Positions 17,593-40,390 of a stretch of DNA of 64,000 nt are shown in pieces (position 1 is the stretch's first letter; every line of letters begins with the position of its first letter). The position numbers were made by a program, and so were the translations under genes. The stretch lies in contig OZ116705.1 in assembly GCA_964199315.1 (NCBI GenBank), positions 11,470,001 to 11,534,000 on the forward strand. Direction: 5' to 3'. This DNA is from Orbicella franksi. Taxonomy: Eukaryota. Below the pieces are notes generated by a model. It had not been told where the DNA came from. It saw only the letters and a list, made by a program, of their open reading frames with translations, and searched no databases.

Positions 17593-17603
17593 GGGGATTC
17601 CCC
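17593..17603. promoter_or_regulatory. NF-kB (p50-type) site upstream of copy B
   Basis: GGGGATTCCCC ~320 bp upstream of the ATG. Confidence 0.6.
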
Positions 17604-18300
17604 TATCCTCTTTCAATGAGGTCAAGACCAGAGATGGAACTCTTTATTATTAGTTGTGTAGTCCACTGTTTTGATACTCCGTTCATCTTAACTCAAAATG
17701 ATCGGTATTTTTGGGAACGGACCATTTTGATCATTTTATGAATCGTTTATCCTGGCTTGCCGCTGAGCCAGAGCATTGCTGGAACGGGCTACCTAAAAAG
17801 GGCGTGGCATTCCCTTTCCGTTGTAGATAATGACGTCAACATTTTGGGCCGCGCCAGAGAACCATCCGGGCTTCTCCGAGGTCTTGTTCGAGCTTCTCGT
17901 GGGTCGATGTTCAGGGACTTCTGAGATTGAGCGGAACTTTAACCGTAATAGTAATTTCATCTTCCTTCCAGTCCGTACTGTGCACTCTCGAGAGTTTGTT
18001 TGTTTTTTTTGTTTTGTTTCATGTAAGACTTCACAAATTGTAAACATTTCGCAACTACTTACACGCTCAAAGTTTGAAACAACCGCCCGAATGGATGCGC
18101 AGCTGTAAAAATCAATTAAGCTGCTGGAAAAAGAATTTGAAAGACTTCAAAGATAAGGTATTTAGTTCGTAAGGAATAGCATCGAGTGATATAAACATAA
18201 GAGTGCTGAGTCTGCGCAGTACGGACTGGAAATCGTCTTTCAGCGCTTCCACTTAAGAGTGGTTTGATTATAAGCGCCGCTGTTCCGATAAGCTCGATTA

Positions 18301-18723
18301 CAGTGACACCGTTATTAAGCGGACCCCATATTAAGCGGCCAGCCTCTATTAAGTGGACACCAGCTTGAGTCCCTCAATTTTCTTCCCATATTTACTGTAA
18401 AAAAAACCTGCATTCAGCGGACACCTCTGTTGAGCGGACGCGGACACCAATATTAAGCCATTTTGTTGCACGAAACCTGCAATAAGCGGACACTTCAAGG
18501 GCTTTTTACTTCTAAAAGCTCAGCTCAGACACCTTTAACCCTGTTCAGCGATGTCGTTTTTAAGCTAAGTAGATTATTCCAGATGGATGCATTGACTGTC
18601 TGGACATTGTGCTATGAGCAGTCTTTGATCTTGCACTGTGTTACAAAAGGGTTAATAATTAATTATTACTACTGAACCTGTTTAGAGGGTCCCAAGGGTG
18701 TCCGCTTAATACAGGTTTCACTG
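18301..18723. mobile_element. Tc1/mariner-type MITE
   Basis: TA flanks; TIR CAGTGACACCGTTATTAAGCGGAC / revcomp CAGTGAAACCTGTATTAAGCGGAC. Confidence 0.8.
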
Positions 18724-18986
18724 TATACTGAAACGAATCGCCACAATGAAGACACTGACAGATGATAACAATACACTGATTAGACAATCTTCTGTCTGAT
18801 TTAAAGTGGCTTTGAAGATATTAACTTCAATAGATACAAGCTAGAGTAGTCTCACTCTAAACCGCGTGCTTTATAGTTCAGTTTTGTTTCTGCTTTTCTT
18901 GGCTAATGCATCCACGTTCCTGTTTTCCCTTGGAAACTGGAAGAAGTCGCCGGGGTTCCAAACATTCCTATGCATTCAAATAAGAT

Positions 18987-19133
18987 CAGTGGCGGATCTA
19001 GGGGAGGGGTCTGCGGCCTCCCCCACTTTGTTTTCGGAAAGGAAAAAATTGCAGAAGGAAGAAGCCGGCAGGGCAAGCACCCCACCACCACCACCACCAC
19101 ACACCCTTAGCTCAAGGTCTGGAGCCGCCACTG
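18987..19133. mobile_element. MITE with 5-bp TSD
   Basis: TIR CAGTGGCGGATCTA / revcomp CAGTGGCGGCTCCA; direct repeat AAGAT on both sides. Confidence 0.75.
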
Positions 19134-20713
19134 AAGATCTTGTTACTTTGGTTATATATCAATCTAACTGTACTTCAGTATCAACAGAAAACAATCTAAG
19201 CAGAATAAACTCCACTCTTTAAGCTAAGGTCCGGTTCAGACGTCGTGCTTCTGCCGTGCCGAACTTAATTGCAATTAGCCTTGACTGTAGCACGGCAAAA
19301 AAGAAAAATACAGCTCTGATTCAGACTTCATGCCAGAGTCGAACCAAACTCAAGATTTACTGAAGCCTCGTAACAATTTTCCTCCTAACTCCCCGTGGAA
19401 ACGCAATCTCTCCAAAATACATTAATATAATTTATGAATTTTGTTTGGCGCGATAAAAGCACCACGTTTGAATCGCTGTCGTACCAGAGTCGTGTTATGA
19501 CGCTATTTATCATCAATAAGAGGACAGACGCATAAAAAACTGACGTTAATTCGTTAAATTGTTGGGAGGACCTCGTGGAATCTCCGAAAATAAATGCATT
19601 CATGAATATCCGAGAAGCGTCAAAATGTTTCAGAAATCTTCGCACGATTTCTTTAGGTCGATAAAAGTCCGAAGACCTCAAACGATCTTTGCTGGTTTTC
19701 GAAGTGATCTTTGAGGGATGCTCGTTTACAAAATTTGTGCTGTTGGTCTGAATTTTATTCAGGGCTCAAAAGGAACTGATGTCGCCGAATTTGCATTGCT
19801 GCATTTTTGATCAAACAGAACCAAAATTATGACTACAACATGTTCCCTTATTGCCCTAAATATTTCTCATATTTTCCCTTGGCTCTCCCTCACACCCCAA
19901 TAATAAGTTCCACTTTTCCCTTCTTCGCTGACGTTTCTGTTAATAATATCCCAAGTACCCTTGAATTATACTAAAAAATATATACGTCCCAGTTGTTCCC
20001 TCGAAATAAAGGTCATGTACCTTCGTTCCCCATGACCTCTAGAGGGCCTCAGCATGTGTAAACTCTGTACCAGAATCGAAATATTGAATGATCATAACTT
20101 GCAGCGGTGTAAACAGCAGTTTTATCGGATGTGAAATCCATACCAACAAGATAGTCTACTGGATCTACAATACATCAAAATATTCTATTAATAAGCGAAA
20201 CCATGCTCTATACACTAAAACACCAAATTATTGTACTCTCTGATGTAATTTCTAGTCGAGGAATTTAAATTTTTAAGAATTTAATCAGATTAGAACTTCG
20301 GTCACGTTTTAGTACTGGAGCGTAATGACAAACTCCAGGGACTTCAAGTCAAAAGCTCAAACAACCATGACGTAACCATCTCCAAAAATACATAGCTTGT
20401 TTAATTTTAAATAACGTTATGTTCTTCGTGAAAATTTACCTACATTTAATAAAAAGCTAGTTTTATATGCTACAATGGTTAAAGAATTTGATGTTGAAAC
20501 AACACGTCCCTGTTCAGATTGCGGGAGAACAGGTCTGCATAGCGAGGTTTCTGCCTTTGAAAATCGAATTTGCTGCATGCCTTCCACGCTCTTTTACTTG
20601 AGAGCGTTTACTGTCTGTTTCTCGTTCTCAGTTTCGACTCTGTCAGATATCCGTGCAATATATGCATGCTCATTGTTTAAATTGATGGTCAAGCTTCAAG
20701 CTAGACTAAAGGC

Positions 20714-22750
20714 TCATTTTGACTCAATAAGATGCATCAAATCAGATTCCGCTCCTGACGAGCTAATGTCGGCATTCTCTCCTTCACTTTCACTTTGCTG
20801 CGGACCATTGTCAATTGTGTCACCGCGCGTGATTGCGCGCATGAAATCGAGACGTTCCTGCGCGTGAGAAGCTTCCAGTTTGAAGCCCATCTTTATTGCC
20901 TTCTCCTTCGCCAAACGTGCAAACTCTTCTGCCTCCGAGTAATTACTGCGTCGGTATTCCAGATCAGAACTAGCCAGGTAAAACAGACTTCTATCGCCCT
21001 GCGCCATCTCTGACCAGTACTTTGTTGTCATCGTGTCTAGGCACGACAGGGCTGTGGCGATAAATTCCTTCCTTACCGTGCGTTTTCGCGCTGCATCGGT
21101 GCGGCAATCCAGCAAAAGCATCGTCATTTTCACCAACACAAGTACGAAGTGGTGTTTCATCACAGACATATGGCTGTTTTCTGTTTCCACATGCAGGCAG
21201 ACGTCGATGCACTTTTCCAGATTACGTCGAACTTCATTCACTTGCGTAAGGCTTCGATGGGAAGTGCGTCCGATGAAATCCATTAACATACTGGCTCGTT
21301 CGTAAGCAATCAAGCTTGTGTCGAGGCTTGTTTGACACGCAGCAATGTTCTGCTCCGCTAGTTGCACATAATGCTCAGCCTTCCCCAGGTCGCCTTGTCT
21401 TCTCGAGATTCCTGCTCGATAGCCGAAGCCTCTTCCGGCCAGGAGATGCTGATTTTTAGCTTCAGGCATGGAAATGAACGCCTCATCGATCAACTGCAGA
21501 GCGCGGTCCGGCTGGTTTTGGTAACAAGCTTGCACGCTTTGTTCCAGTTTAATGGCTATATGAGTGTCCGCATCACTAAACATTAGCAATAGATCGCTTG
21601 CATACTTGTCAAAATCTTTCCACTTTGCGTTGTCACGGCGTGACTGAAGCTGATTCACAACCCAGGAAGATCTTTTGTACAGCACAGTGCTCTCCTTAGA
21701 AAGGGAAGGTGGGATCAAAGCAAACAATTTGGAAACCGCGCTCTCTTTAGGCTTTTCCTTAGTCTTGCCTGATTTTGATGATATCAGGGACCCTGTTTCT
21801 AGCGTGACCGAAATTTGGCAGATCGTTTCACAAGCAGTGTGTTCCTTTACACTTCTTAGTTTTCCTCTTCTTTTCCGTGGAGCGGCTTTCAAGGAAAAAG
21901 TGATCTTGTATTTGGTGTCAGACTCGTGGAAGCGGAACAGATAACCGACAACTCCTATCATGGACCCTTCTGTGTCGCTTTCACTTTTGCTTTTGATGCG
22001 TTTACACTGATAATCAGGCAATGTAAGACTAGATTCACCAGCTACATCATAACTTACTGCCACTGTCACATCGTAATTGTCTGCGATGTCAAGCGCTTCT
22101 CTTGTATGTTGATTCTTACAGACCAGCAGTTGTACTAAGTGATCGTTGTCGCAATCGGGGAAGCCAAGTCTACTCCGACCAACGCTCAGAGGTCCACGGG
22201 GTTTCCAGTGTTCTCTCAAAACAGGTTGGCCTTCGTTGTTTCCTTTTATCTTGCTGGAGTCCCCAGAAGGTGTCGAGTTATCCACTGGACTAAAATTTAG
22301 GACATTATCGCTCCCAATTTGCATGATACAAGGGTTAACAATGTTCATAACAATAGCATTCTCACTTCCCCTCGAAGCTCGCTCTTCCTCGCCTGACTCA
22401 CTTTCGGAAACGTTAGGGAAGCCAAGTCTACTCCGGTCAACGCTCAAAAGTCCACGTGGTTTCCAGAGTTCTCTCAACACAGGACCACCTTCATCGCCGC
22501 TTTTAATCTTGCTGGGATTTTTAGAAGGGATCGGATCATCAACAGTTTTAAAGTTCAGCAAATTATCTCCACCAATTTGCAATATACTGGCGTTAATATT
22601 CAAAACAAGGGAGTTGTCACTTCCGCTTGCTGCTCGTTCTTCCTCGCTTGAATCACTTCCAGGATCATCAGTCCCATTGTAATCATTTGAGGCTCCCACT
22701 GCATCGCATCTTTTCACTCGACCTTCGTCAAAATCTCCACTAGTAGCCAC
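20714..22750 (-). CDS. Double-RHIM / beta-domain / TPR-like protein, copy C, 678 aa, GTG at the orthologous start
   Basis: Intact reading frame; two QIG..N motifs 86 aa apart; gcgaaGTGGCT where copy F has gcgaaATGGCT. Confidence 0.8.
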   Translation of the reverse strand: MATSGDFDEGRVKRCDAVGASNDYNGTDDPGSDSSEEERAASGSDNSLVLNINASILQIGGDNLLNFKTVDDPIPSKNPSKIKSGDEGGPVLRELWKPRGLLSVDRSRLGFPNVSESESGEEERASRGSENAIVMNIVNPCIMQIGSDNVLNFSPVDNSTPSGDSSKIKGNNEGQPVLREHWKPRGPLSVGRSRLGFPDCDNDHLVQLLVCKNQHTREALDIADNYDVTVAVSYDVAGESSLTLPDYQCKRIKSKSESDTEGSMIGVVGYLFRFHESDTKYKITFSLKAAPRKRRGKLRSVKEHTACETICQISVTLETGSLISSKSGKTKEKPKESAVSKLFALIPPSLSKESTVLYKRSSWVVNQLQSRRDNAKWKDFDKYASDLLLMFSDADTHIAIKLEQSVQACYQNQPDRALQLIDEAFISMPEAKNQHLLAGRGFGYRAGISRRQGDLGKAEHYVQLAEQNIAACQTSLDTSLIAYERASMLMDFIGRTSHRSLTQVNEVRRNLEKCIDVCLHVETENSHMSVMKHHFVLVLVKMTMLLLDCRTDAARKRTVRKEFIATALSCLDTMTTKYWSEMAQGDRSLFYLASSDLEYRRSNYSEAEEFARLAKEKAIKMGFKLEASHAQERLDFMRAITRGDTIDNGPQQSESEGENADISSSGAESDLMHLIESK

Positions 22751-23004
22751 TTCGCTCGGGAAATTTAATTTTGACGCTTTCTACAATTTTCCCAACGGGT
22801 TGTCAAAACCGATACAACTTTATCAGGGAGTTATCACATAGCCAGCTTCCAAGACGGCTGAGTAATGGTTTAGAAAGCAAGACATCGCCGTAAATTCAGG
22901 CTCTATTTAAGCTCATACACCAGACACGTAACCAGATGATATGAAATCGAAAGCGTAAGCAATTTTTTCGTAGCTGTTTTTTAAAATAGATGTAACCTCT
23001 CCTC

Positions 23005-23015
23005 GGGGATTCCCC
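23005..23015. promoter_or_regulatory. NF-kB site upstream of copy C
   Basis: GGGGATTCCCC ~255 bp upstream of the start. Confidence 0.6.
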
Positions 23016-23827
23016 AGTGCGTGATGTCAGAATCAAACTTATCTTGTGTCGTTTTGACATTCCTTTCGAACATCTGTCGTTTTTATATCTTTACTTTCAC
23101 TTGAAAGTGAGCAGTATTTTTGGAAGGAAACTACTATAGGTATTTCTGTCTTCTGATTTTTTTTTCTTCCTTTTTTTTTTTTTTTTCTTTTAAATCGGTT
23201 CCTTTTCAGCTAGCTAATGATTCATCATTTGTTGAACGTGTTCCTTTTCACGTTCATCACAACTCGTTCCCAGAGCCCGCACTTTTTCGATCAACCGTGA
23301 CCGAACGCGTGACTAAACGACTAAAAAAACACAGGAACACAGGTAACTAACAGTGCATTTATTTTTACTGCTAATAATGTAGTGTACGGGTCCCCTGTGG
23401 ATACACTGAGTTCTCTCTTTCCACTGTAATTTGTGGTCGAGCACTTCAAATTAACAACTTTGATACGGGCTAAATGCCATGCCGGGAATGACAAAGGTCC
23501 AGTGACTTAAAGTCATATATTAAAAGATCAAACAACTACAGGAAAAGCATTTAAATATATACATAGCTTGTTTGGTTTCAGATTACGTGATGTTCGTTAT
23601 TAAAGGCTAGCTTTATTTCTTACATTGGTTGGAAAATTTGATGTTAAAAAAGTTCCGAGAGAACAGTCTGCATGGCAACGGTTCTGCCTTCAAATGTCGA
23701 AATGGATGCCTCTCAGTTTATTTTCAATATTTAATTTGTGCGTTTGCCGTTAGTTCTCGGTTTCCACTCAGTGAGATATCAGTGCTGTACATGTATATGT
23801 GAGGTCATTTCGACTCAATAAGTAACA

Positions 23828-25996
23828 TCAATTCAATATTGCAGTCAGCCAATCAGACTCCGCTCCTGACGAGCTAATGTCGGCATTCTCTCCTTCGCTT
23901 TTACTTTGCTGCGGACCATTGTTGATTGTGTGACCGCGCGCGATTAGGCGCATGCAATCCAGACGTTCCTGCGCTTTTCGCAAGTAGTGGCCCATCTCCG
24001 CCGCCTTGTTCTTCGCCAAACGAGCAAACTCTTCTGCTGCCGTGTAATTGTTTCGTCGATATTCCAGATCAGAACTAGACAGGTAGAAGTAAACTTTGTC
24101 TACCAGCGTCATTTCCGACCAGTACTTGTTTCTCAGTGTGTCTAAGCACCATTGTGCTTTCGCGATAAATTCTTCATTTACAGTGCGTTTTCCAGGGGCA
24201 CCCAACGACCGTTTTCTCTCTAATGCTGTTAGATGCTGTTTTAGGCTATCTGGAGTACTTTTAAAGCTCTGTAGGTTAATTTTAGGTTGCACTAAAAAAA
24301 TTTTATCTGTTCGGATATTCTAGGGGAACTTGAGTATTCTCGAATTTATTAGGGCTTTTTTGTCCATTTCCCGAAAACCTTAGGTCTTATCGCCTTTCCG
24401 AAAATGATAGCTGACCTTTTTTCGGTACTCAAAACGACATTTTCAACAGTCCGAAAACAACAGACATTAAATTTCTCATATCACGAAAGTTCGAGGTGCC
24501 AATTCTCTCAAGAAAATCAGAGGGGATTAAAGGCTTTCCGAACAGATAATTTACCGAAACGATCCGTTGGGTGCCCCTGGTTTTCGGGCGACATCGCTGT
24601 CGCAATCGAGCAAAATTGTTATCATTGCGAGCAACGCAATCACGAAGACCTGCTTCACAAACAAATCGCTGTTTTCTGTTTCCACATGCAGGCAGACGTC
24701 GATGCACTCTTCCAGATTACTTCGAGCTTCATTGACTAGCTTCAGGCTTCGATGGGGAGTGCGTCCGATGAAATCTATTAATATACTTGCTCTCTCCCAA
24801 GAAATCAAGCTTGTTTCGAGGCCCGTTTGACACCCAGCAATGTTTTGCCAGGCTAGATTCACACAGTACTCAGCCTCTCCTAGGCTTCCTTGTGTTCTCA
24901 AGATTTCTGCTCGATAGAAGTAGCCCCTACCTGCCAGAAGCTGAGGATTTTTTGCTTCAGACATGAAACTGAACGCCTCGTCGATCAACTGTAGAGCGCG
25001 GTCTGGCTGGTCTTGGTAAGAAGCTTTCATGCTTTGTTCCAGTTTTATGGCTATGTGAGTGTCTGCATCAGTAAACGTCAGCAATAGATCGCTTGCGTGT
25101 TTATAAAAATCTTCACTCTTAAAGCTGTTACGGCACGACCGAAAATGATTCGTAACCCACCAGGATCTTTTGTACAGTACAGTACTCTCTTCAGAAAGGC
25201 AAGGTAGACTCAAGGCAAACAATAGGGAAACAGTGCTCTCTTTAGTCATTTTCTTAGCCTTGCCTGTTTTTGATGATATCATGGGTCCTGTTTCTAGCGT
25301 GACAGAAATTTGGCAGATCGTTTCACAAGCAGTGTGTTCCTTTAAACTTCTCTTTTTCCCTCTTCTTTTCGGTGGAATGGCATTTAAAGAAAAACTGATC
25401 TTGTATCTTGTGTCAGTTTCGTGGAAGCGGAACAGGTAGCCGATAACTCCTATCATGGATGCGTCTGTGCCGCTTTTAGTCAGCTCACTTTTGATGCGTT
25501 TACACTGATAATCAGGCAATTTAAGACTAGATGCACTTTCTCCATCATAACTTACTGCCACTGTTACATCATAATGACCTCCGATGTCAAGCGCCTCCCG
25601 TGTATGTTGATTCTTACAGACCAGCAGTTGTACTAAGTGATCGATGTCACAATCAGGGAAGCCAAGTCTACTCCGACCAACGCTCAAAAGTCCGCGTGGT
25701 TTCCAGTGTTCTCTCAACACAGGACCATTCTCGTCGCCGCTTTTGACATTGCTTTGATTTTCAGAATGGATCGAGTCATCCACTGATCTAGAGTTCAGAA
25801 AATTGTCTCTAGCACTTTGGAAGATACTATCGTTAACAACATTCAAACCAAAGAAGTTGCCATTGTCGCTTGTTTCTCGCTCGTCGTCACTTAAATCACT
25901 TCTAGAAACATCGGTCCCATTGCAATCATCTGCAGCTCCGACTGCTTGACACCTTTTCACTCGACCGTCGTCGAAACCTTGACTACCAGTAGCCAT
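23828..25996 (-). pseudogene. Copy D, MITE-disrupted paralog with degenerate RHIM
   Basis: Removing the 393-bp insert+TSD restores a 591-aa ORF highly similar to copy E; RHIM core reads FQSARDN. Confidence 0.85.
24193..24579. mobile_element. MITE inserted in the copy D coding sequence
   Basis: Perfect 15-bp TIR CAGGGGCACCCAACG; 6-bp duplication GTTTTC (alternatively a 16-bp TIR with a TTTT TSD); the empty site is seen in copies E and G. Confidence 0.93.
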
Positions 25997-27751: not shown

Positions 27752-28195
27752 CCTAGGGGGGTTCCAACATGAATAGGACGCGGTTGCTCAACGGAAATTT
27801 GGAAAAGAACCCCTAAAAGGTGCCAAGATGCCGCTTCGTGGGTGTGGCTTGAATTTTTTTTCACCCCAAAGAAGTACCAATTCTAACACAAGACATTAAC
27901 TCCTGTCATATTTTTTTTTTCGCTTATACCATAAAAGGTACCTCAAAAGCTATCGCTGTGGACTTTTTGGGCCTTGACTTGTCTTAACANNNNNNNNNNN
28001 NNNNNNNNNNNNNNNNNNNNNNNNNNNNNNNNNNNNNNNNNNNNNNNNNNNNNNNNNNNNNNNNNNNNNNNNNNNNNNNNNNNNNNNNNNNNNNNNNNNN
28101 NNNNNNNNNNNNNNNNNNNNNNNNAAACCTCTTTTAAACTCCTGAGAATTTCGACGAGCACCCCCGTCCTTTTTACGTGGGAATCTCCCCTGGGG
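27752..28195. mobile_element. MITE spanning the assembly gap
   Basis: Left end ccctagggggggttccaacatgaataggacg resembles the revcomp of the right end ccccaggggagattcccacgtaaaaaggacg. Confidence 0.6.
27990..28124. other. Assembly gap (135 N)
   Basis: Run of N. Confidence 1.
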
Positions 28196-29751: not shown

Positions 29752-29783
29752 TTAATAATATCCCTCGGTCCTTTGAATTAATC

Positions 29784-32700
29784 CAGGAGGGAGAGGTCAA
29801 CTTCGCTTGCGTTGCCATGGGATTGCGCGCCCGATGATCTTGGCCATTATGACGTCACTCGTGTGCCGGCCCGTGAAGTTTCAGTGAGCGCTAAAGAATG
29901 ACACCAGACAAGTTTTTCATCCGATGATTGCTCAAAGAATTTGAAAGAAAGCGATCAACAGACCACAGGAACAAGATAACCTGTTAATATTATGTCCAAA
30001 AATACTTTGGTGTTCAAAAACTAGAAGTCAGAAGGCACAAAAACATGCAAAATTTCGAGATCGCTCAATTAAAAACGCGATTGAAAAGTGGAGCTTTGCA
30101 CCCGTTTCTTGGGCGATATCTGGAGAACCCAACAATGAACAACACGAACACAAAAACATGATCTTGATATGGTTTAAAACGTTCGAATAGTGATGAAAAC
30201 GAATCATTTAACATGTGCATAAAATGATCAGTGGGTTTAAACCCATTATTTTGTAGACCATAGCGTGGAGGACCCGCTGATCGATACTCGAAACCCTCGA
30301 ATTATGAGAAAATGCTCCCTTGCAAAGGCATTTGAACTATCAAGTCATACGCTGGGTTGGAAAGTAAATAATGTACCAAGGAATTATTTTTCTGCGCTAA
30401 ATTATCCACAAAACCGTCAAAGATAACATTTTCTTCTGCGAGGCCAACCAGCTCCGAGCAGACGTGTGGATATTTTAGATGGTAAAATGATATAAAATCA
30501 CTCTACAGGAGACCTAGATGAAACGGATAATATTCAGAATAACACGGACCAGACCTCTTGTCAGAAAGGAGCTTCATTTCATGTCAAAATGTTCGTCAAA
30601 TATGAGATTGGAGCATGATCCGTTTCCTCGGGCGTCCGCATGCAGTGCAAAGCTGTTTCTTCTTCTGAACTTCCGACAAGAGAGGTATCCTGAACTGGTG
30701 CTTTGGGTTCTATTTATTTTTCATTTCTCAGTATAGACTGTATAGACTGTAAAAGACAACTGCGTAGGATGTCATATAGAAAGACCTAAAAAATACAGAA
30801 TCTGGTTCCAAGCAGCAAGTGAATTAAAGACGAAAGGATATATGAACAGGGATACTTCCTATGCTAAGTCATTAGCAATAAGAGTTAACTTAACAAGGAG
30901 AAACTTGTTAAGCCAAAATGACTTTTTGCCAAAACAAAGAGTTCAGTAGAAGGTTATGACAAAGCTAGAAAGATCAATATCAGGTGATCTCTTATTAAAA
31001 CCAAACCCCTTGTTTTCTAATAGTATCTGTCTTGACAAACTGTAATAGCTTTACTACCACTAAGTTTGAAATGATAATCAATTCTTTTCTTTATACTTTA
31101 TGCTTTTAATTTTCATCATAAATCTTATGTGAACAAAGATAGCTCTAACAATTATTTTACACTAGACTTAAACTGAACTACAAAGAAGTATTCTCGAGAA
31201 GAGTGTCACAGAGGTTGTACTTGTAAACATGAACTTCAAGCCTGATTTCTCCCCAGCTCCTTCCATCCCAGGTTCCCTGTTGCTTTTTGCATTGATGAGT
31301 TTATTTTTGGCTTCAAGAGAATGATAAGTGTACATTTCCAGCAAATAACACACAGGATTGGGTTTTAAATGTTTAATTGACAGTACATTGACAATAAATA
31401 GATAGCTTTCCATGGTGGTTGCATGTACTGCCAGAAATGGGACCTGCTTGAATGGTCTTGCAAAGGTAGCGGAGGATGGTAACTTAAGGTTTAAAAAGAT
31501 CAAAATAATAAGACTCCTCATAATATTCACCAGTCAAAAATTGCAGTAAATGTTTATATGACCTCCCTTCCCTCTTTGGTTTTCATATCGCCCCTAACTC
31601 TTTTTAACAGAACATGTAAACTAAAAGACAAATTTCCTAATGAGATCCAGCACCAAGAACTCGAGTATGTATTTACCATTAAAAAAATGCAATTCTCACA
31701 ATTAAATGATCCAACCCCCATCCACCTTTTAAGTCCCGTCCAAGCAGATACAATGCGGTAATGTACATGGAGCTAATATCATAATTTATAAAACATTAAA
31801 TAGCTCATTTCCAGTATCAATGTATTGAACTGAGGTCTTCAGATTTTCAGCACCCTCACCTGCACAAAAAAGAAAAATAAAATTTTCTGAAGCATGTCAA
31901 ACAAACTACAACAATCACTCTGCATAAAGCATTTTTGGATCCTTACTTAAAGAAAAGTTACAATATTGTTTAGGAATTAAAATAAATCAGACTTCCAATA
32001 CCTAAATTGTTGATCAACAGTGCCAATTTTGTAAACATAATAAGATTCAGCAACAGGAACTCAAGGCGACCAAGTTTGGTACTCAAGTTTTGCTATATAA
32101 GCATACATAATTGCAGCTGACAGTGAGGCCCCATATTTGATCTTAGGTAACCAAGAAAGCCCTCGCCCCAGTGATCCTAAACGAGCTAACTTTCACTGTT
32201 TTATTGAGAAAGTGAAACACAAGCCACCCTTAGCAACATAACCAAGGTAATCCTGGTAGCCATGATAACCTTTTTTCGTCAAAATACTATGACTGGCCTA
32301 CTTGGAGCAACTCATGGTATGAAGAAATAAAAATTAACTCACAAAACCCCACAGTGATCAAATGACTGAAAGGAAGCCAAAGAAAGAAGGATAACTGAGC
32401 ACTGGAGTATGAAAAAAGGCTTAAGTAATCCTGGAAGGACCACTTCATGTCATATATTAAACACTTGATAAAGTTGCCTCAGAAGGGTCTGATAGGGTTG
32501 CCTTCAGTACCCGAGACCATATAAATGGGGCCTTGTACTCTCTCCTCTGCAGAGGCTCCCTATGGGAAATTGAATATACTCCGAACTACCAGCCTGTGGT
32601 TAAAGCAGCACAAAAGTGGCCTATGAAGAAGAGAAAAGTCTTACAACACTAGACTGCAAACGATGGGTAAAATGTAGACTGCAGGCTTTTTAGGAATATC

Positions 32701-33517
32701 ATATTCCCATTTCCATTTATAAAGAGATCGAGCTGACCATACACCGGCTAACCTGTGCCGTATATTTCAGGCTAAACGGAGCACAAGCTCTATATAAAGG
32801 AAATGGGAATACAATATTCTTAAAAAGTCTGCAGTCTGCATGTTATCCTCTCTGCATTTTAACCACCGTTGTGCAGTAGGCAGGCTTTGTCTTATTTAAA
32901 TAATTAAGCTTAAGTTCTTGTTTGTGAAAGTTCTCATTTCCTTCATTGTGGATAATATTTCTGTTTGCTAGGCCCATTGCAGAATATGTGAAAAGGTTTC
33001 AGTTTTGTGAAAGAACACTCCGAGCACGAGATCGCAGATATTTCATACTCAAATGGACTGATCATTTTTACTGCTAATTCTTCAAAATCATCTTCAGATA
33101 CAATGTTTTCCTATACATATAAGCTATTCTGTGACCAAGTTACACGCTTCTTTACGTTACCGATCACGTAATAAGGGCAATTTTACAGGGCGAATAGTCA
33201 AAATTTTGCCCCACATATTTCCAACGGAGAGCGATGACTGTAACACTTTACATACACTTTCTGCAAGATTTTTCGGTTATAATTAAAATCTACTTACCTC
33301 TAAAGAAAGAAAAATGATAATCACTCCTTGAGATCCAAATACAATACCATTTGAATCTGGAATGATTGGAGAAATCTGCCTCAAAAAGTTGTATCAGCGA
33401 GAGGCGACGACGCCATTTTCGAAAATTTTGTGCATTTGCGCGCTTCTATCGCCGTGACGTCATAATGGCCATGATCATAGGGTCAGCCAAATCTGACGTG
33501 TTCACCTCTCCCTCCTG
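29784..33517. mobile_element. 3.7-kb hAT/P-like DNA transposon, decayed
   Basis: 8-bp TSD AATTAATC on both sides; 18-bp TIR CAGGAGGGAGAGGT(C/G)AAC; perfect subterminal inverted TGGCCATTATGACGTCAC; no intact transposase ORF. Confidence 0.88.
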
Positions 33518-34319
33518 AATTAATCTTAAAAATATTTCTTTTTGCCTCGATATGAATAGTTGTGTTATTTTTTTCCCTATAACCCTTAGCGCGCCCTCAG
33601 GGTGTGTAAACTCTGTGGCATTTGTTCTTACAGAAAAATAACGGCAAGGAGATTCGAAATATTAAATGATCATGATTTGAACCATATAACAACAGTTTTA
33701 TTAGATCTGAGATCCATACCCAAAATAACAAGATGCTCTACTGAATTTACTAAAAATACGCTCTGAGCATGCTCTGCCCATTACAACTCCGACTGCGAAT
33801 TCGTTACGTAAATGTTATGATTTGCGCTGTCTCAGCGAAAAGTGGGAGCTGTCACTTCTCATGATCACAAAAAACTACTCAATGAATTTAATAAGACATG
33901 CACTTTTACGGTTCCTGTTAGGCTTGAACGGTTTTCCCGTAAAATGAGCTTCGGTCAATGTTAGGGATGACAAACGTGCAATGATCATCACATTAACTCA
34001 TATATATTAAAATATCAAACAACTACAGGAACAGCATTTATATAAATACATTGCTTGTTTGGTTTTAGATTACGTGATGTTCGTGATTAAACGCTACCTT
34101 TATTTGCTACATTGGTTGGGGACTTCAATGTTTAAAAAAAACCGAAAGAACAATTAGGTCTGCATGACATTGGTTTTGCCTTCAAAAATCGAAATGGCTG
34201 CCTCTCAGTTTATTTGCGATATTTAATTTGTGCGTTTGCCGTCAGTTCTCGGTTTCCACTTAGTGAGATATCAGTGCAATGCATGTATGTGTAAGGTCAT
34301 TTCGACTCAATAAGTAACA

Positions 34320-36026
34320 TCAATTCAATATTGCAGTCAGCCAATCAGACTCCGCTCCTGACGAGCTTATGTCGGCATTCTCTCCTTCACTTTCACTTTG
34401 CTGCGGACCATTGTCGATTGTGTGACCGCGCGTGATTACGCGTATGAAATCGAGACGTTCCTGCGCTTTAGGAGGTTGTAAGTAGAGGCCCATCTCCACC
34501 GCCTTGTTCTTCGCCAAACGAGCAAACTCTTCTGCCTCCGTGAAATTGCTTCGTCGATATTCCAGATCAGAACTAGACAGGTAGAAGTAAACTTTGTCTA
34601 CCAACGTCATTTCCGACCAGTACTTGTTTCTCAGCGTATCTAAGCACCACTGTGCTTTCGCGATAAATTCTTCATTTACAGTGCGTTTTCGGGCGACATC
34701 GCTGTCGCAATCGAGCAAAAGTATTGTCATTGCGAGCAACGCAAGCACGAAGAGCTGCTTCACAAACAAATCGCTGTTTTCTGTTTCCAAATGCAGGCAG
34801 ACGTCGATGTACTTTTCCAGATTACTTCGAGCTTCATTGACTAGTTTCAGGCTTCGATGGGGAGTGCGTCCGATGAAATCTATTAATATACTTGCTCTCT
34901 CCCAAGCAATCAAGCTTGTGTCGAGGCCCGTTTGACACCCAGCAATATTTTGCCAGGCTAGATTCACACAGTGCTCAGCCTCTCCTAGGCTTCCTTGTGT
35001 TCTCAAGATTTCTGCTCGATAGACGTAGCCCCTACCTGCCAGAAGCTGAGGATTTTTTGCTTCAGACATGAAACTGAACGCCTCGTCGATCAACTGTAGA
35101 GCGCGGTCTGGCTGGTTTTGGTAAGAAGCTTTCATGCTTTGTTCCAGTTTTATGGCTATGTGAGTGTCTGCATCAGTAAACGTCAGCAATAGATCGCTTG
35201 CGTGTTTATAAAAATCTTCACTCTTAAAGCTGTTACGGTATGACCGAAGCTGATTCGTAACCCACCAGGATCTTTTGTACAGCATAGTACTCTCTTCAGA
35301 AAGGGAAGGTGGACTTAAGGCAAACAATAGGGAAACAGTGCTCTCTTTAGTCATTTTCTTAGCCTTGCCTGTTTTTGATGATATCATGGGTCCTGTTTCT
35401 AGCGTGACAGAAATTTGGCAGATCGTTTCACAAGCAGTGTGTTCCTTTAAACTTCTCTTTTTCCCTCTTCTTTTCAGTTGAATGGCATTTAAAGAAAAAC
35501 TGATCTTGTATCTTGTGTCAGTTTCGTGGAAGCGGAACAGGTAGCCGATAACTCCTATCATAGATGCGTCTTTGCCGCTTTTATTCAGCTCACTTTTGAT
35601 GCAGTTACACTGATAATCAGGCAATTTAAGACTAGATGCACTTTCTCCATCATAACTTACTGCCACTGTTACATCGTAATGACCTCCGATGTCAAGCGCC
35701 TCCCGTGTATGTTGATTCTTACAGACCAGCAGTTGTACTAAGTGATCGATGTCACAATCAGGGAAGCCAAGTCTACTCCGACCAACGCTCAAAAGTCCGC
35801 GTGGTTTCCAGAGTTCTCTCAACACAGGACCACCTTCATCGCTGCTTTCAACTGATCTAAAGTTCAGGACATTATCGCTTCCAATTTGCAATGTGCCAGC
35901 GTTTATGTTCAAAACAATGGAGTTGTCACTTCGTGTCGTTTCCCGCTCCTCCTCGCTCTGATGACATCCGGGAACATCAGTCTCAAAGCAGGGATTGATG
36001 TCGAAATTTTGGGAACCAGTAGCCAT
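34320..36026 (-). CDS. RHIM / beta-domain / TPR-like protein, copy E, 568 aa, intronless
   Basis: Intact ATG ORF; VLNINAGTLQIGSDNVLNF. Confidence 0.9.
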   Translation of the reverse strand: MATGSQNFDINPCFETDVPGCHQSEEERETTRSDNSIVLNINAGTLQIGSDNVLNFRSVESSDEGGPVLRELWKPRGLLSVGRSRLGFPDCDIDHLVQLLVCKNQHTREALDIGGHYDVTVAVSYDGESASSLKLPDYQCNCIKSELNKSGKDASMIGVIGYLFRFHETDTRYKISFSLNAIQLKRRGKKRSLKEHTACETICQISVTLETGPMISSKTGKAKKMTKESTVSLLFALSPPSLSEESTMLYKRSWWVTNQLRSYRNSFKSEDFYKHASDLLLTFTDADTHIAIKLEQSMKASYQNQPDRALQLIDEAFSFMSEAKNPQLLAGRGYVYRAEILRTQGSLGEAEHCVNLAWQNIAGCQTGLDTSLIAWERASILIDFIGRTPHRSLKLVNEARSNLEKYIDVCLHLETENSDLFVKQLFVLALLAMTILLLDCDSDVARKRTVNEEFIAKAQWCLDTLRNKYWSEMTLVDKVYFYLSSSDLEYRRSNFTEAEEFARLAKNKAVEMGLYLQPPKAQERLDFIRVITRGHTIDNGPQQSESEGENADISSSGAESDWLTAILN

Positions 36027-37228
36027 TTCAGTCGGTAAATTTCAATTTTCACGCTTGCCGCAAGTCACCCAAAGAATTGTCAAAAAATCAAACTTTTTTG
36101 TGCACTGTTAAAACCCGTGCTGGTCACTGATCAGAGTGATACCCGTGATTTTCAAGCACCCGTGATGGTCGTCTCGGACATGCCTCTCTTGACCGTCACG
36201 GGATCGTCACGTAACTATTCAGTGGAAGCCCACCTTACCACGGCAGTTTTTTTCTGGCCGGAGCAAAAGCTCATCCGGTCATTGTTTTCTTTAAAGAACC
36301 CCGTAAATAAGGTTCCCCCGTCAATACGAACAGATTTTTGTGGCGCGTTGGTGACCGGATTAACGAGGTTGTACTTAGTTGGGAAATTAATTTTCACGGC
36401 TTTGAGCCGGATATACCTCAAGAAAAATTGACCAATCCCGCAAAACGCGAATGTCCCCCTCTAAAATCAAAGGGTGTTTGGAGAAGGTTTTCACGATTTA
36501 GGACCTACAAAGGAGGCCTCTCAGTGGAGGAAAGATACTTGAAAAATTTCTCAAGTTTGTCCTTGGCCTAATAAAAAATTCTTTTCTCTGAAGTTTCTCT
36601 TGGTTTCCGTGAACAGTATCCCTTGTTCCTTTGAACCAATTTGAAAAATATTCTTTATTTCCTCGAAGTAAATGGCCATGTTCCTTAATTTGTACCCCAT
36701 TACCAAGAGCGAGCACTCAGTAAGTCTAAACTCTGTAGCCGCTACAGAAAAAATGAATACAAGTAGAATAAACAGCAGTTTTACTGACTCTGAAATCTAT
36801 ATCCAACGTAACAAGATAGTCTACTGAATCTAATTAAATCGAATAAAATATTCTATTACACTCTTTATTTGATAAGAATACATTTTATACGAAATTTTAA
36901 GATGATATTTTATGAATAAACCCGAGGCTGAGATTTTGAAAAGAATCTAACTTTGTGCGTTAATAGAATTACTGTATATGATTTTAACTAAACCATATAA
37001 AATTCAAAAGCAGCACTAGCCGTATGTTTGATGCAAATAACATTTCTGGAAGAGGTTAGGTGTGTCATATCCAGTATTTATTGCGTGCAGTCTGGCTCCA
37101 AAATACCATCCAGACACCGAAAACATTCGAAAATAGAAATGGCATTACGCTATAATCTAAGAATATTCACAAGAATATTTTCACTGAGCGTAAAATCGGC
37201 AGAAAAGCAATAATATTTAGCCTCGGCC

Positions 37229-37330
37229 GGAGTAGCAATACTCCTAGTCGCTTCATGCTACAGATACCGGCCGGTGGGATAAGTTCTGGCCTGACTACCC
37301 ACTAGGTTCGTATGCAAACTTTACCCCTTT
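37229..37330 (+). mobile_element. 3' fragment of tRNA-derived SINE
   Basis: Similar to the 3' part of the 54801-55090 element (aatactcctagtcgcttcatgctacaga...actttacc). Confidence 0.7.
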
Positions 37331-37644
37331 ACCTAACCTTTACATCCTACATAAAGTGATTGGAGAATGATTTTAAACAGACCCAAGGTTAAGCTTAACC
37401 CAGAGTAGGTCTGTCTTTGCTGCCTTTCACGGTATAAGCTATCTTTAATTTGCTTGTGAGTCTTTACTGTTGCTCAGTTTCGATACAATCAGATATCAGT
37501 GGAGTATGTTAAACTTCGTTAAATTATTTCCTCGAAAGGAGGAATTTCTCGCGCATGCTGTTGTTTATTCCTAACATGGCGCCAGTGCGTGACTGTTAAC
37601 CTGGTCTGCACAGAACTGACGTAGTTTTGACTCAGTGAGCAGCA

Positions 37645-39423
37645 TCAATTCAATATTGCACTCAGCCAATCAGACTCCGCTCCTGACGAGCTAATGTCGG
37701 CATTCTCTCCATCACTTTCACTTTGCTGCGGACCATTGCCGATTGTGTGACCGCGCGTGATTGCGCGCATGAAATCGAGACGTTCCTCCGCTTGGGAAGC
37801 TTCCATTTTGTGATTTGTCTCCACCGCCTTGTCCGTCGCCAAAAGCGCAAATTTCTCTGCCTCCACATAATTGTTTTGTCGGTATTCCAAATCAGAACTC
37901 GCCAGGTAGAACAGAGTCCTATCTCCCTGTCCCATTTCCGCCCAGTACTTGCTTCTCAACATGTCTAAGCATGACTTTGCTGTCGCGATAAATTCCTTGC
38001 TCACGGTGCGTTTTCTCGCGGCATCGCTGCGGCAATCGAGCAAAAGCATTGCCATTTTGACGTACACAAGCACGAGAAAGTGGCGTTTCATCACAGACAA
38101 TCGGCTGTTTTCTGTTTCCACCCGCCGGCAGACGTCGATGCACCTTTCCAGAATACGTCGAGCTTCATTCACTAGTTTGAGGCTTCGCTGGGGAGTGCGT
38201 CCAATGAAATCCATCAGCATACTTGCTCTCTCGTAATCAATGAAGCTTGTGTCGAGGGTCGTTTGACACGCAGCGATGTTTTGCTCCGCTAGTTGCACAT
38301 AATGCTCAGCCTTCCCCAGGTCTCCTTGTCGTCTAAAGATTCCCGCTCGATAGCCGTAGCCCCTACCGGCAAGAAGCTGCGGATTTTTCGCTTCAAACAT
38401 AAAATTGAACGCCTCATCGATCAACTCCAGAGCGCGGTCCGGCCCGTTTTGGCCGTAACAAGCTCCCACGCTTTGGGACAATTTAACGGCTATCCGTGTG
38501 TCCACGTCGGTAAATGTCAGCAATAGATCCTTTGCGTACTTGTCACAACCTTCATAGTTAGCTCTGTCAATGCGTGACTGAAGCTGATTCACAACCCACC
38601 AGGATCTTTTGTACAGCGTTATGCTCTCCTTAGAAAGGGAAGGTGGATTCATCAACGCAAACAAAGGGGAAACAGCGCTCGCTGTTGACCTTCTCCCTGT
38701 CTTGCCTGATTTGGATGATGCCACGGGCCCGGTTTCCAGTGTAACCGAAACTTCGCTGATGGTTTCACCGGGTGTGTGTTTCTTTGTTTTCTTTCTCCCG
38801 CTTCTTTTCGATGGAATGGCGGTCAAGGAAAAACTGATCTTGTATTTGGTGTCAGGCTCGTGGAAGCGGAACAGATAGCCGATAAGTCCTATCATAGACT
38901 CATTTGTGTCTCTTTCAGTTTCGCTTTTGATGCGTTTACACTGATAATCAGGCACTGATTTAAGGCTAGATTCACTTGGTTCATCGTAACTTACTGCCAC
39001 TGTTACATCGTAACCGCCTGCGATGTCAAGCGCCTCTATTGTATGTTGATTCTTACAGACCAACAACTGCACCAAGTGATCGTAGTGACAATCAGGGAAG
39101 CCAAGTCTACTCCGGCCAACGCTCAGAAGTCCACGGGGTCTCAGGAGTTCTCTTAACACGGGACCACCTTCATCGCCGCTTGTAACCTTGCTGGGATCTT
39201 TAGAACTGAGGATCGGATCATCCACGGTTCTAAAGTTCAGGACATTATCTCTACCAATTTGCAATAGACTGGCGTTAATATTCAAAACGAAAGAGTCGTC
39301 ACTTCCGCTTGTTTCTCGTTCTCCCTCGCTTGAATAACTTCCAGGATCATCAGTCGCATTGTAATCATCTGAAGCTCCGACTGCATCGCATCTTTTCACG
39401 TCGAAATTTTCACCAGTAGCCAT
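37645..39423 (-). CDS. RHIM / beta-domain / TPR-like protein, copy F, 592 aa, intronless
   Basis: Intact ATG ORF; VLNINASLLQIGRDNVLNF. Confidence 0.9.
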   Translation of the reverse strand: MATGENFDVKRCDAVGASDDYNATDDPGSYSSEGERETSGSDDSFVLNINASLLQIGRDNVLNFRTVDDPILSSKDPSKVTSGDEGGPVLRELLRPRGLLSVGRSRLGFPDCHYDHLVQLLVCKNQHTIEALDIAGGYDVTVAVSYDEPSESSLKSVPDYQCKRIKSETERDTNESMIGLIGYLFRFHEPDTKYKISFSLTAIPSKRSGRKKTKKHTPGETISEVSVTLETGPVASSKSGKTGRRSTASAVSPLFALMNPPSLSKESITLYKRSWWVVNQLQSRIDRANYEGCDKYAKDLLLTFTDVDTRIAVKLSQSVGACYGQNGPDRALELIDEAFNFMFEAKNPQLLAGRGYGYRAGIFRRQGDLGKAEHYVQLAEQNIAACQTTLDTSFIDYERASMLMDFIGRTPQRSLKLVNEARRILERCIDVCRRVETENSRLSVMKRHFLVLVYVKMAMLLLDCRSDAARKRTVSKEFIATAKSCLDMLRSKYWAEMGQGDRTLFYLASSDLEYRQNNYVEAEKFALLATDKAVETNHKMEASQAEERLDFMRAITRGHTIGNGPQQSESDGENADISSSGAESDWLSAILN

Positions 39424-39966
39424 TTCGCTCGGTAAATTTTTTTTTTTCGCAGTTGTCGTTGCTGCGCAGCAGAGCGAAAACGCATAATATAGGCATGCGC
39501 GGGAGCCTGCTGTGTTTCCAATCTCTGTCGAGATTCTATTTAACTTGCGTGCAGGCTGTGGTTTTTATTCGTTGTAATTTTATTCCACTTTATTTGAGTT
39601 TTTATCTATTTATTTTTGTGTTTAAATTTAGATCTTTGTAATTTAATTAATGAACGAGTATACGGGTATACAGCTTTATGGCCTCTTCTCGGCGTTCTCC
39701 TCTGTGTCATGTCAGTAATTTAGTTAATCAAGGCTGCTCGTGTATGCTTTGTGACAGCTGATACATTTATTTTTTGGAGTATTCTCAATGCTTTTTGCAT
39801 TGTATTTTCATGTCTTATTATATTTTAAATTACTAAACTTCTACTTGGTATAATTTTAGGTAATTCTTATTGTATATATTTTGAATTTTAATTTTTAATA
39901 TACTGTGTCCCTAATAAGCTCCTTGTTACTTAAGAGCTAGATATTCTCAACTGGCACATAAATAAT

Positions 39967-39998
39967 CTTCTTCTTCTTCTTCTTCTTCTTCTTCTTCT
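39967..39998 (+). repeat. (CTT)n microsatellite, possible retroelement tail
   Basis: ~11 CTT units preceded by an AT-rich tract and AATAA. Confidence 0.9.
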
Positions 39999-40379
39999 TT
40001 GTTCATTTAATCTTGCACTCATGTCATTACCCACTTGGTGACTGTGAAGCTCTGCTTTCTGGCTAGTCGCTGTGACGTGCAAGCGAATTTTTAAACGACG
40101 TGGGGAGGAGGGAGAGTGTTTGGCAAACTAACGTCCTCGTTAGCCTGAATGATTCATAAGCCGACAAGCGAGCCCTGTTTATTAGTCGCTAAAATCGCGG
40201 TCAAATCAACTTTCATCACCTTTCATGGAGTTAATGAATAACCCAGGGTCTTACTGACAGATCTCAGCGTATGATAAAGGAGAGAATTTTTACATGCGGG
40301 CCGGATTTCATTTCCTCTCTAAATAGAGTGAAGTTGATATGTTGCGTGACTGCATGTGTCATCTGAACGGCCTCTTCTC

Positions 40380-40390
40380 GGGGATTCCCC
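40380..40390. promoter_or_regulatory. NF-kB site upstream of copy F
   Basis: GGGGATTCCCC in context homologous to the copy C promoter; ~960 bp upstream of the ATG. Confidence 0.55.

Follow-up and report, generated by a model that had tools for sequence, protein, structure and literature searches.

A conserved NF-kB-type 11-mer upstream of a coral gene family with a RHIM-like motif

In an array of tandemly duplicated genes of the stony coral Orbicella franksi, the 11-mer GGGGAATCCCC, which is the same as the most familiar NF-kB site, is conserved beyond its flanks and constitutes a phylogenetic footprint. Since the 11-mer has remained unchanged while the surrounding DNA diverged, the genes that carry it are strong candidate NF-kB targets. 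We consider it probable that the 11-mer is an inherited cis-regulatory element under purifying selection, most likely bound by a homodimer of the coral's single p50-like NF-kB, and that it would descend from the promoter that the non-A family genes had in their common ancestor. The analysis shows the sequence itself, how well it is conserved, where it stands with respect to RNA 5' ends and that the coral has an NF-kB gene; NF-kB occupancy and inducibility are inferred, as would be any feedback role of the encoded proteins. The window, i.e. the whole stretch of DNA that was analysed, comprises 64,000 nucleotides (contig OZ116705.1 of assembly GCA_964199315.1, positions 11,470,001 to 11,534,000 of the forward strand), and holds the following gene copies:

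10460-12604, minus strand: copy A, 714 aa, of a divergent subfamily
15486-17276, minus strand: copy B, 596 aa from the homologous ATG, for which a structure model was made
20714-22750, minus strand: copy C, 678 codons with two RHIM-like motifs, GTG at the start-codon position
23828-25996, minus strand: copy D, split into two ORFs, tetrad degraded to FQSA, no kB site
34320-36026, minus strand: copy E, 568 aa, with no kB site in its upstream 1.2 kb
37645-39423, minus strand: copy F, 592 aa
42383-43115, minus strand: copy G, a 5'-truncated fragment equivalent to E residues 326-568, with an E-type upstream region directly attached

The GTG of copy C is also present in the RNA contigs, in which no difference was seen at this position.

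A scan of the window recovered every site listed in an earlier, sequence-only reading of this DNA, namely exact GGGGATTCCCC on the plus strand at 17593-17603, 23005-23015 and 40380-40390, and a one-mismatch site, GGGTATTCCCC, on the plus strand at 12768-12778. In the orientation of genes A, B, C and F, all of them minus-strand, GGGGATTCCCC reads GGGGAATCCCC, and all four sites (three exact, one near) lie upstream of these intronless paralogs. In gene orientation, with distances counted from the first base of the site to the homologous ATG, they are:

12768-12778, minus strand: A-type near-site GGGGAATACCC, at -174, no match to GGGRNWYYCC
17593-17603, minus strand: kB 11-mer GGGGAATCCCC of B, 327 bp before the ATG, identical in all B-type orthologs examined
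23005-23015, minus strand: kB 11-mer of C, 265 bp before the start-codon position
40380-40390, minus strand: kB 11-mer of F, distal, 967 bp before the ATG

When up to one mismatch was allowed on both strands, the window gave 7 matches against 0.27 expected from dinucleotide shuffles, none of 100 of which reached 7. Genome-wide, the 11-mer was counted 288 times in 497 Mb, compared with 139 for a reversed-sequence control, and this low density places three copies in 23 kb far over background. The local excess is the product of duplication of one promoter module, in agreement with the earlier view that the sites are homologous and not independent occurrences. Membership of a transposable element was ruled out, as the genome-wide copies stand in unrelated contexts.

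The test suggested earlier, whether the 11-mer is more conserved than its flanks, gave a clearly positive answer both in the array and across other coral assemblies. Within the window, the flanks of the B site are diverged from those of C and F with the 11-mer intact, as had been noted before, and for the wider comparison we used the 700-bp upstream regions of seven B-type genes from five coral assemblies. The 11-mer was the only word of at least 7 nt common to all seven regions, and was always located 303-327 bp before the ATG, even where the remaining promoter could not be aligned; the longest word shared by the 3' flanks was a 6-mer, and shuffled sequences shared words of 5-6 nt. A perfect 11-mer was found in 6/6 B-type ortholog loci within approximately 70% protein identity (five distinct sequences, -303 to -327), among which the triplets flanking the site differ, and a more distant assembly contributed two genes, with 59-62% protein identity to B and promoters that are no longer alignable, that carry the 11-mer at -304 and -310. 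By column shuffling, an invariant run of at least 11 in the B alignment had a P of ~0.01. The B lineage keeps the element without exception. Outside of this lineage, the gene tree has no major non-A subclade without the 11-mer or a variant that keeps the consensus, and a Porites homolog is among the carriers; in some non-A genes, GGGGAATTCCC stands for the 11-mer. Of the 25 non-A genes examined, 15 had a consensus match less than 500 bp from the ATG, with the same orientation in every case. This count is to be read in light of the relatedness of the paralog copies, which makes counts across paralogs not independent. No Oculina patagonica homolog was found in the contig index.

These patterns bear on whether the 11-mer has any function at all, given that its survival could in principle reflect chance, locally infrequent mutation or GC-biased conversion between the paralogous genes. 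The three copies in the window are homologous, tandem arrays make gene conversion plausible, and several paralogs plus one allele-like contig have lost the site, the gene showing no obvious damage. We nevertheless regard a functionless 11-mer as highly improbable: a perfect copy placed equally far from the ATG in seven genes of five assemblies, two of these genes with unalignable promoters, is not what drift would leave, the 3' flanks and shuffles share 6-mers at most, and conversion within a genome cannot hold a sequence identical between species.

Constraint on the element leads to the question of which protein binds it. The 11-mer fits the kB consensus GGGRNWYYCC, as do both tolerated natural variants, GGGGAATTCCC and AGGGAATCCCC, and it is the very sequence of the kB site in the MHC class I H-2 enhancer, a site that is promoter-proximal as well. 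Mammalian zinc finger proteins of the HIVEP/MBP-1/PRDII-BF1 type also bind that MHC enhancer sequence. The MHC H2 site consists of two 5-bp GGGGA half-sites around a central A:T, has been co-crystallised with the p50 homodimer (PDB 1SVC), and showed the top apparent affinity for the p50 homodimer of all sites compared in binding microarrays (PMC9262625). Sea anemone NF-kB has a p50-like binding profile and was assayed on GGGAATTCCC, the core of the variant present in P8b, the L031 C gene and Porites (PMC5700166); the supplementary files of that study, as far as they were available to us, do not contain the 11-mer and hence gave no anemone protein-binding microarray (PBM) score for it. The earlier statements that this is a high-affinity p50-type site and that anthozoan NF-kB is p50-like thus agree with the literature, the former by way of sequence identity with the H2 site. 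In the coral genome, a single locus carries both RHD_DNA_bind and RHD_dimer (C10:23.874-23.878 Mb), and a scan for autoregulatory sites upstream of it, where the TSS position is not fixed, returned only a few generic consensus matches. The coral arrangement differs from the MHC one in that the site stands upstream of an unrelated gene family and the putative binder is a single ancestral NF-kB, as opposed to a p50/p65 repertoire.

An unlikely alternative is that the 11-mer is constrained but bound by a different factor, either a HIVEP/Schnurri-type zinc finger or a factor that acts jointly with the neighboring TGAC(A/C)TCA. Conservation demonstrates constraint and not the identity of the protein, mammalian zinc fingers recognize the same MHC sequence, and TGAC(A/C)TCA is a second element conserved beside the site. 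Against this, the tolerated variants keep GGGRNWYYCC as NF-kB predicts, the 11-mer is the optimal site of the p50 homodimer (PMC9262625), and the cnidarian factor resembles p50 (PMC5700166). Two further candidates were ruled out, the RBP-J/Su(H) type (YGTGGGAA) by the freely varying left flank and EBF by the opposite polarity of GGG...CCC. NF-kB remains the binder that we favor.

The 11-mer is accompanied by additional promoter elements, of which those nearest to the B and C sites are as follows:

17617-17624, minus strand: TGACCTCA, AP-1/CRE-like, 13 bp upstream of the B kB site
23022-23029, minus strand: TGACATCA, 6 bp upstream of the C kB site
17532-17544, minus strand: CGCTTTCGATATC block, ~50 bp downstream of the B kB site
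22943-22955, minus strand: CGCTTTCGATTTC block, read as GAAATCGAAAG on the opposite strand, on the downstream side of the kB site of C

In most copies, the distant L047 and L048 among them, TGAC(A/C)TCA precedes the kB site by 6-17 bp, and CGCTTTCGATATC is the second most conserved block among the B orthologs. The latter is possibly an IRF-like GAAAG half-site. In MHC class I promoters an ISRE follows enhancer A, and the GAAA-containing block downstream of the coral site resembles that order.

Transcript data place the sites of B and C close to promoters. The Logan RNA contigs of both genes are polyA; those of B end at 17439 and 17465 (128-154 bp downstream of the site), and the C contigs extend to 22935 and 22971 (34-70 bp downstream), such transcript 5' ends being a lower bound only. 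Because the contigs end shortly downstream of the sites, both sites are promoter-proximal. A single low-depth RNA contig (X5) reads through the C site. Within the 12% of raw-read run X24 that was analysed, neither B nor C was covered, and the run thus yielded no base-level TSS. In the proposed mechanism, B and C would thus each have the 11-mer in the proximal promoter, with TGAC(A/C)TCA 6-13 bp upstream and a CGCTTTCGAT(A/T)TC block ~50 bp downstream, and given this layout NF-kB activation would raise their transcription.

A position near the promoter is supported for B and C, but not for F, where an insertion intervenes:

39551-40071, minus strand: ~520 bp insertion in the F upstream region of the window, absent from the F ortholog L036
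39691-39700, minus strand: degraded kB copy GGAGAACGCC with the same 3' flank, GAGAAGAGGCC, ~270 bp before the F ATG

The F site is homologous to that of L036, which reads AGGGAATCCCC and is located at -454, and window segments 40496-40072 and 39550-39005 are matched by sequences that adjoin each other in L036. The kB module of F is distal (-967) because the insertion parts it from the proximal promoter, and the insertion itself carries a degraded copy of the module. Consequently, the F site cannot be counted as a proximal promoter site, the proximal copy having decayed to GGAGAACGCC. For the stretch from the F ATG to the distal site, no RNA run held more than 0.37 of its words, and the intact site stands no less than ~600 bp away from the 5' extent inferred for the RNA. 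We also considered whether the distal module could be the solo promoter of a deleted paralog, and rejected this, as 39950-40379 had no above-shuffle similarity when compared with all proximal promoters and 5' UTRs; the comparison with L036 identifies the layout of F as an insertion and not a solo promoter.

Retention of the 11-mer upstream of C, as claimed previously, applies to the window but only in part to a related assembly, in which the orthologous site reads GGGGAATTCCC on one contig (L031) and GGGGAATTACC on the other (L029). These two C contigs are ~99% identical and come from the same assembly, with the site degraded on one of the two. For D and E, no site with one mismatch or fewer was detected within 1.2 kb upstream, and G has an E-type upstream region, which agrees with the reported lack of a proximal site in all three. 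Intact paralogs that lack the element are E, P8a, L030, the F-like gene of L033 and one Porites copy; many intact paralogs can dispense with it. Among the recently duplicated copies C-G, the element would appear to be in the course of being lost, displaced or mutated, with D, E and G devoid of it, that of F pushed 700 bp away and that of C polymorphic in the related assembly.

The near-site reported upstream of A is a different matter. Its position is kept across assemblies, and GGGGAATACCC recurs unchanged in L029, in L032 and in the distant L047 g2, but it is variant or absent in L031, L033 and L034, and the kB consensus is matched at this position in 0/7 A-type genes. It can be retained as a conserved position, and not as a kB site.

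The family proteins combine the RHIM-like motif with a beta domain and a TPR-like domain. The tetrad reads LQIG or MQIG in the copies, the canonical RHIM core being (V/I)-Q-(V/I)-G, and Q60 and G62 of the motif are almost invariant in 35 homologs; LQIG is a natural RIPK3 variant in fish and amphibian (PMC12119088). In the structure model, the N-terminus is disordered, with short strands of low confidence predicted at residues 57-61 and 67-71. Searches of the N-terminal pieces gave no Pfam match to the RHIM profile, even at E up to 10, and Pfam and PDB-independent protein searches gave no RHIM match either; a protein atlas search found weak TPR look-alikes only, and Foldseek of the AF2 model against Swiss-Prot models returned generic TPR matches only (TM <=0.4). 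The resemblance to RHIM is at the level of the motif only. Vertebrate RHIM proteins (RIPK1, RIPK3, ZBP1, TRIF) likewise have an x-Q-I-G core in a short beta-prone segment, with V or I as the first residue of the tetrad in contrast to the coral L or M, while the coral proteins are without a kinase, death, Z-alpha or TIR domain and without a Pfam RHIM match.

Links between RHIM-type motifs and NF-kB are known from the fly Imd pathway and the vertebrate RIPK pathways, and Pirk is a Relish-induced negative regulator of the Imd pathway. By analogy, NF-kB could induce the coral proteins, whose RHIM-like motif would then damp the pathway. The likeness would be one of proposed logic, an NF-kB-type site upstream of a gene with a RHIM-like product that could feed back; the coral proteins are ~600 aa with beta and TPR-like domains. 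The (L/M)QIG tetrad conserved in a predicted disordered N-terminus with short predicted strands is in keeping with such a loop, and vertebrate RHIM proteins do act on NF-kB signalling (PMC12119088). We consider it very unlikely all the same, as the RHIM-like motif has no Pfam match, the results are neutral as to the direction of effect, and a large TPR-like domain plus a beta domain would be no less expected of an inducible sensor or adaptor, acting feed-forward, than of a small inhibitor.

Direct NF-kB targets in corals are essentially unknown, and a recent review urges that they be defined by ChIP-type and knock-down work (PMC13042239). The targets predicted in the sea anemones Nematostella and Exaiptasia (e.g. 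TRAF3-like, BCL3 and heat-stress genes enriched in kB sites) are likewise cnidarian candidates with proximal-promoter kB sites; those, however, rest mainly on a motif in one genome, whereas the coral site is also footprinted across assemblies and paralog lineages, and the coral RHIM-like family is not among the targets named there (PMC13042239). A short element footprinted by evolution in a transcribed promoter is a concrete and cheaply testable case, and it offers studies of bleaching and disease a candidate gene for reading out NF-kB activity. Moreover, it would tie an uncharacterised, coral-expanded family with an amyloid-type motif to a central immune transcription factor, making RHIM-like signalling in cnidarians experimentally approachable. 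The array is in itself a natural experiment, with the site present (B, C), displaced (F) and absent (E), all comparable in the same RNA-seq data. Tentatively, and with rather more doubt than conviction, we can envisage that stony corals possess an ancient innate-immune circuit in which the single p50-like NF-kB drives a family of TPR proteins with a RHIM-like amyloid motif via a composite enhancer conserved across Scleractinia, made up of the Jun/ATF-like TGAC(A/C)TCA, the kB 11-mer and the IRF-like GAAAG block. If this were true, RHIM-type signalling would have been linked to NF-kB before bilaterians arose, and corals would have a natural NF-kB reporter in the B promoter.

Two minor features of the window complete the description:

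27990-28124, no strand: assembly gap between D and E, ~5 kb from the nearest site and ~2 kb upstream of the D ATG
17413-17421, minus strand: TTTCGAAAC, at approximately -145 of B

The gap touches no family ORF or site, and bears only on the copy count between D and E. The word TTTCGAAAC is invariant in the five distinct closer B orthologs, and also occurs at -20 in A (12617-12625).

The seven paralogs are intronless, lie on the minus strand within 10.4-43.1 kb of the window (G000:C8:11470001-11534000), which comes from a coral genome of 497 Mb, and are present in RNA runs labelled coral. The kB 11-mer, which reads GGGGAATCCCC in gene orientation, was found at the positions that the sequence-only reading had named, as was the near-site of A.

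10460-12604, minus strand: copy A, intact, divergent subfamily
12768: near-site GGGTATTCCCC, 174 bp before the ATG of A
15486-17276, minus strand: copy B, intact
17593: GGGGATTCCCC, 327 bp before the ATG of B
20714-22750, minus strand: copy C, frame open, GTG at the start-codon position
23005: GGGGATTCCCC, 265 bp before the start position of C
23828-25996, minus strand: copy D, split into two ORFs
27990-28124: assembly gap in the D-E spacer, distant from every kB site
34320-36026, minus strand: copy E, intact
37645-39423, minus strand: copy F, intact
40380: GGGGATTCCCC, 967 bp before the ATG of F
42383-43115, minus strand: copy G, fragment

As had been claimed, D and E lack the element, with no site of at most one mismatch in 1.2 kb upstream. 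The window holds seven matches vs 0.27 in shuffles, so this set of sites cannot have originated by chance; genome-wide, the 11-mer occurs in 288 copies per 497 Mb, about twice the reversed-sequence control. Because the window sites are homologous, as was also recognized earlier, it is their retention, rather than their occurrence, that needs explaining.

Retention of the 11-mer clearly exceeds that of its surroundings, both within the array and across other coral assemblies. The alignment of B with C stops at the site and that of C with F starts there, bearing out the claim that the flanks of B have diverged from those of C and F around an intact 11-mer. Orthologous loci were reached via homologous proteins in five other ENA coral assemblies, one coral metagenome scaffold and Porites harrisoni. 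Among six B-clade loci, which include two contigs of one assembly that are ~99% identical (L029 and L031), the perfect 11-mer lies 303-327 bp before the homologous ATG in every case, and its immediate flanks vary (ATA/ACC, ACA/GCC, ATC/ATC, TTA/CAG). In a more distant assembly, two genes whose proteins are 62% and 59% identical to B carry it at -310 and -304, in promoters that are otherwise unalignable with that of B. Without alignment, the sole word of at least 7 nt common to seven B-type 700-bp upstream regions falls within GGGGAATCCCC; in the 3' flanks of these genes the longest common word is at most 6 nt, and in shuffled upstream regions it is 5-6 nt. For an invariant run of 11, column shuffling of a five-sequence B alignment gave P ~0.01.

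When aligned to 17100-23099, contigs of public RNA runs place the B and C sites in the proximal promoter, which counters the concern stated beforehand that the sites might lie far from any promoter; contig ends are lower bounds only on transcript 5' ends. For C, polyA or unspecified RNA contigs fitting at ≥99% extend to 22935 and 22971, stopping 70 and 34 bp short of the site on its downstream side; a single metatranscriptome contig of low depth crosses it, and may represent read-through from D, or DNA. For B, contigs extend to 17439 and 17465, stopping 154 and 128 bp short of the site, again on its downstream side, with zero depth past that.

The site of F was counted with those of B and C, which are indeed proximal, but it has been displaced: unlike its ortholog (L036), F has ~520 bp (39551-40071) inserted between kB module and proximal promoter. 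This insert holds a degraded module copy, GGAGAACGCC (39691-39700), with the same flank, GAGAAGAGGCC, as the intact module. Across 39424-40400, RNA runs contain at most 0.37 of sampled words, and runs of unrecorded library type (presumably DNA) 0.98. On this indirect evidence, the insert and the low RNA content, transcription of F probably begins close to the degraded copy, leaving the intact site ~600 bp or more upstream. Module duplication recurs, with three cases comprising window F and the B orthologs of L032 (two perfect copies, 8604-8614 and 9677-9687, 1073 bp apart) and L033 (7263 and 8002, one perfect and one degraded).

Upstream of A, the window, L029, L032 and a distant A-type gene (L047) all have GGGGAATACCC, at the same distance to the ATG; one G is lost in L031, L033 has GGGGATTACCC, and L034 is also variant. 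Although position is kept, the kB consensus is matched in no A-type gene examined, and the near-site may be a different or weak element.

On the gene tree A forms a separate clade, and every major subclade of the remaining genes contains the site.

State of the kB site in non-A genes
B clade: perfect, 6/6
L034 inverted paralog: perfect, -304
C, window: perfect
C, L031 (L031:5616): GGGGAATTCCC
C, L029 (L029:9764): GGGGAATTACC, degraded
F, window: perfect but distal
F, L036: AGGGAATCCCC
F-like, L033: no site
D/E clade: perfect in L035; no site in D and E
Second array, same chromosome, P8b: GGGGAATTCCC at -424, plus GGGATTTCCC at -254
Second array, same chromosome, P8a: no site
Porites: GGGGAATTCCC at -184 in one of two tandem homologs

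Of 25 non-A genes, 15 have a consensus-matching site within 500 bp of the ATG, and its orientation is the same in all of them. The simplest reading is an ancestral element that the B lineage has strictly retained and that recent duplicates have lost repeatedly; several of these duplicates are in decay in any case (D, G, and C in its start codon). The earlier account is corrected in three respects: the site of F has been displaced, that of A does not count as a kB site, and retention is lineage-specific. L029 and L031, which are probably haplotypes, differ at the C-ortholog site (GGGGAATTACC vs GGGGAATTCCC) and at the A near-site, so both sites may be polymorphic in that species.

NF-kB would fit as the binder. 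The view of the 11-mer as a high-affinity p50-type site agrees with published work: it is the MHC H2 kB site of the p50-homodimer crystal structure 1SVC; among the sites compared in binding microarrays, its apparent affinity for the p50 homodimer was highest, and of three natural sites it alone was activated by p50 homodimers (PMC9262625). Likewise, the sea-anemone NF-kB binding profile resembles that of human p50, unlike c-Rel or RelA, in keeping with the p50-like character proposed for anthozoan NF-kB; the sequence assayed was GGGAATTCCC (PMC5700166), the core of a natural variant in three lineages here. Natural variants that persist retain GGGRNWYYCC, and the consensus-breaking changes GGGGAATTACC and GGAGAACGCC are found in copies under apparently relaxed constraint. 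A single locus of the genome combines RHD_DNA_bind with RHD_dimer. A zinc-finger factor of equal specificity may bind the 11-mer instead. The best reading of the 11-mer is that of a conserved NF-kB-type promoter site of B, C and their orthologs, and that B/C-type genes would be NF-kB targets is a well-founded hypothesis. That the proteins are RHIM proteins, or act in feedback as Pirk does, is speculative. Pfam searches of these proteins returned weak TPR signals and no RHIM match; in the AlphaFold model of B, the N-terminus is disordered, with two short strands where the conserved (L/M)QIG motif lies, and is followed by a beta domain (residues 90-235) and a TPR-like helical solenoid (residues 267-554).

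In most copies, distant ones included, TGAC(A/C)TCA precedes the kB site by 6-17 bp; ~50 bp downstream of that site stands CGCTTTCGAT(A/T)TC. These resemble Jun/ATF and IRF half-sites, respectively, from which a putative composite immune-type enhancer would follow, as a lead only. Further conserved blocks in the B promoter are CGCTTT-CGATATC at ~-265 and TTTCGAAAC at ~-145 (17413-17421). The latter also occurs at -20 in A (12617-12625), inside the palindrome GTTTCGAAAC, is invariant in closer orthologs of both clades, and may be a core-promoter or factor site common to A and B. Farther upstream, ~230 bp from the kB site of B, a perfect CRE palindrome, TGACGTCA (17831-17838), is kept in B orthologs other than L032, in which the distal region has been replaced.

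Several copies show other peculiarities. The GTG of C (22748-22750) is ATG in all other copies and in C orthologs, and RNA contigs across it agree with the genome; since the next in-frame ATG stands just before the second RHIM-like motif, C may yield a shorter, single-motif protein, or none. In D the tetrad has decayed to FQSA. As G matches only residues 326-568 of E and is directly adjoined by an E-type upstream region (89% identity to 36027-37183; G and this region together, 42383-44340), it looks like an E-like copy minus its first ~325 codons. A 360-aa ORF just past copy A on its 3' side (8964-10046, minus strand) contains a YVDD motif like that of reverse transcriptases and is probably a retroelement remnant. 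The B-C spacer (18100-18900, 19500-19700) hosts an abundant transcribed repeat family, as indicated by an RNA-contig depth of up to thousands and by numerous loose ends and short skips. The close paralogs P8a and P8b lie 6.4 Mb from the window (G000:C8:5045061-5051721), and another, with an in-frame TGA, on C11:3960244-3962001.

Elsewhere in the genome, 11-mer copies have unrelated contexts, several being followed by CTTTCGA, and some are clustered. The copy at G000:C1:16065614 (L041:2615) precedes by ~940 bp a 429-aa ORF whose match to the TNFR cysteine-rich domain (TNFR_c6) is sub-threshold, and the C3 copies at 12.62 and 12.72 Mb have ACTTTCGA within 6-8 bp after the 11-mer.
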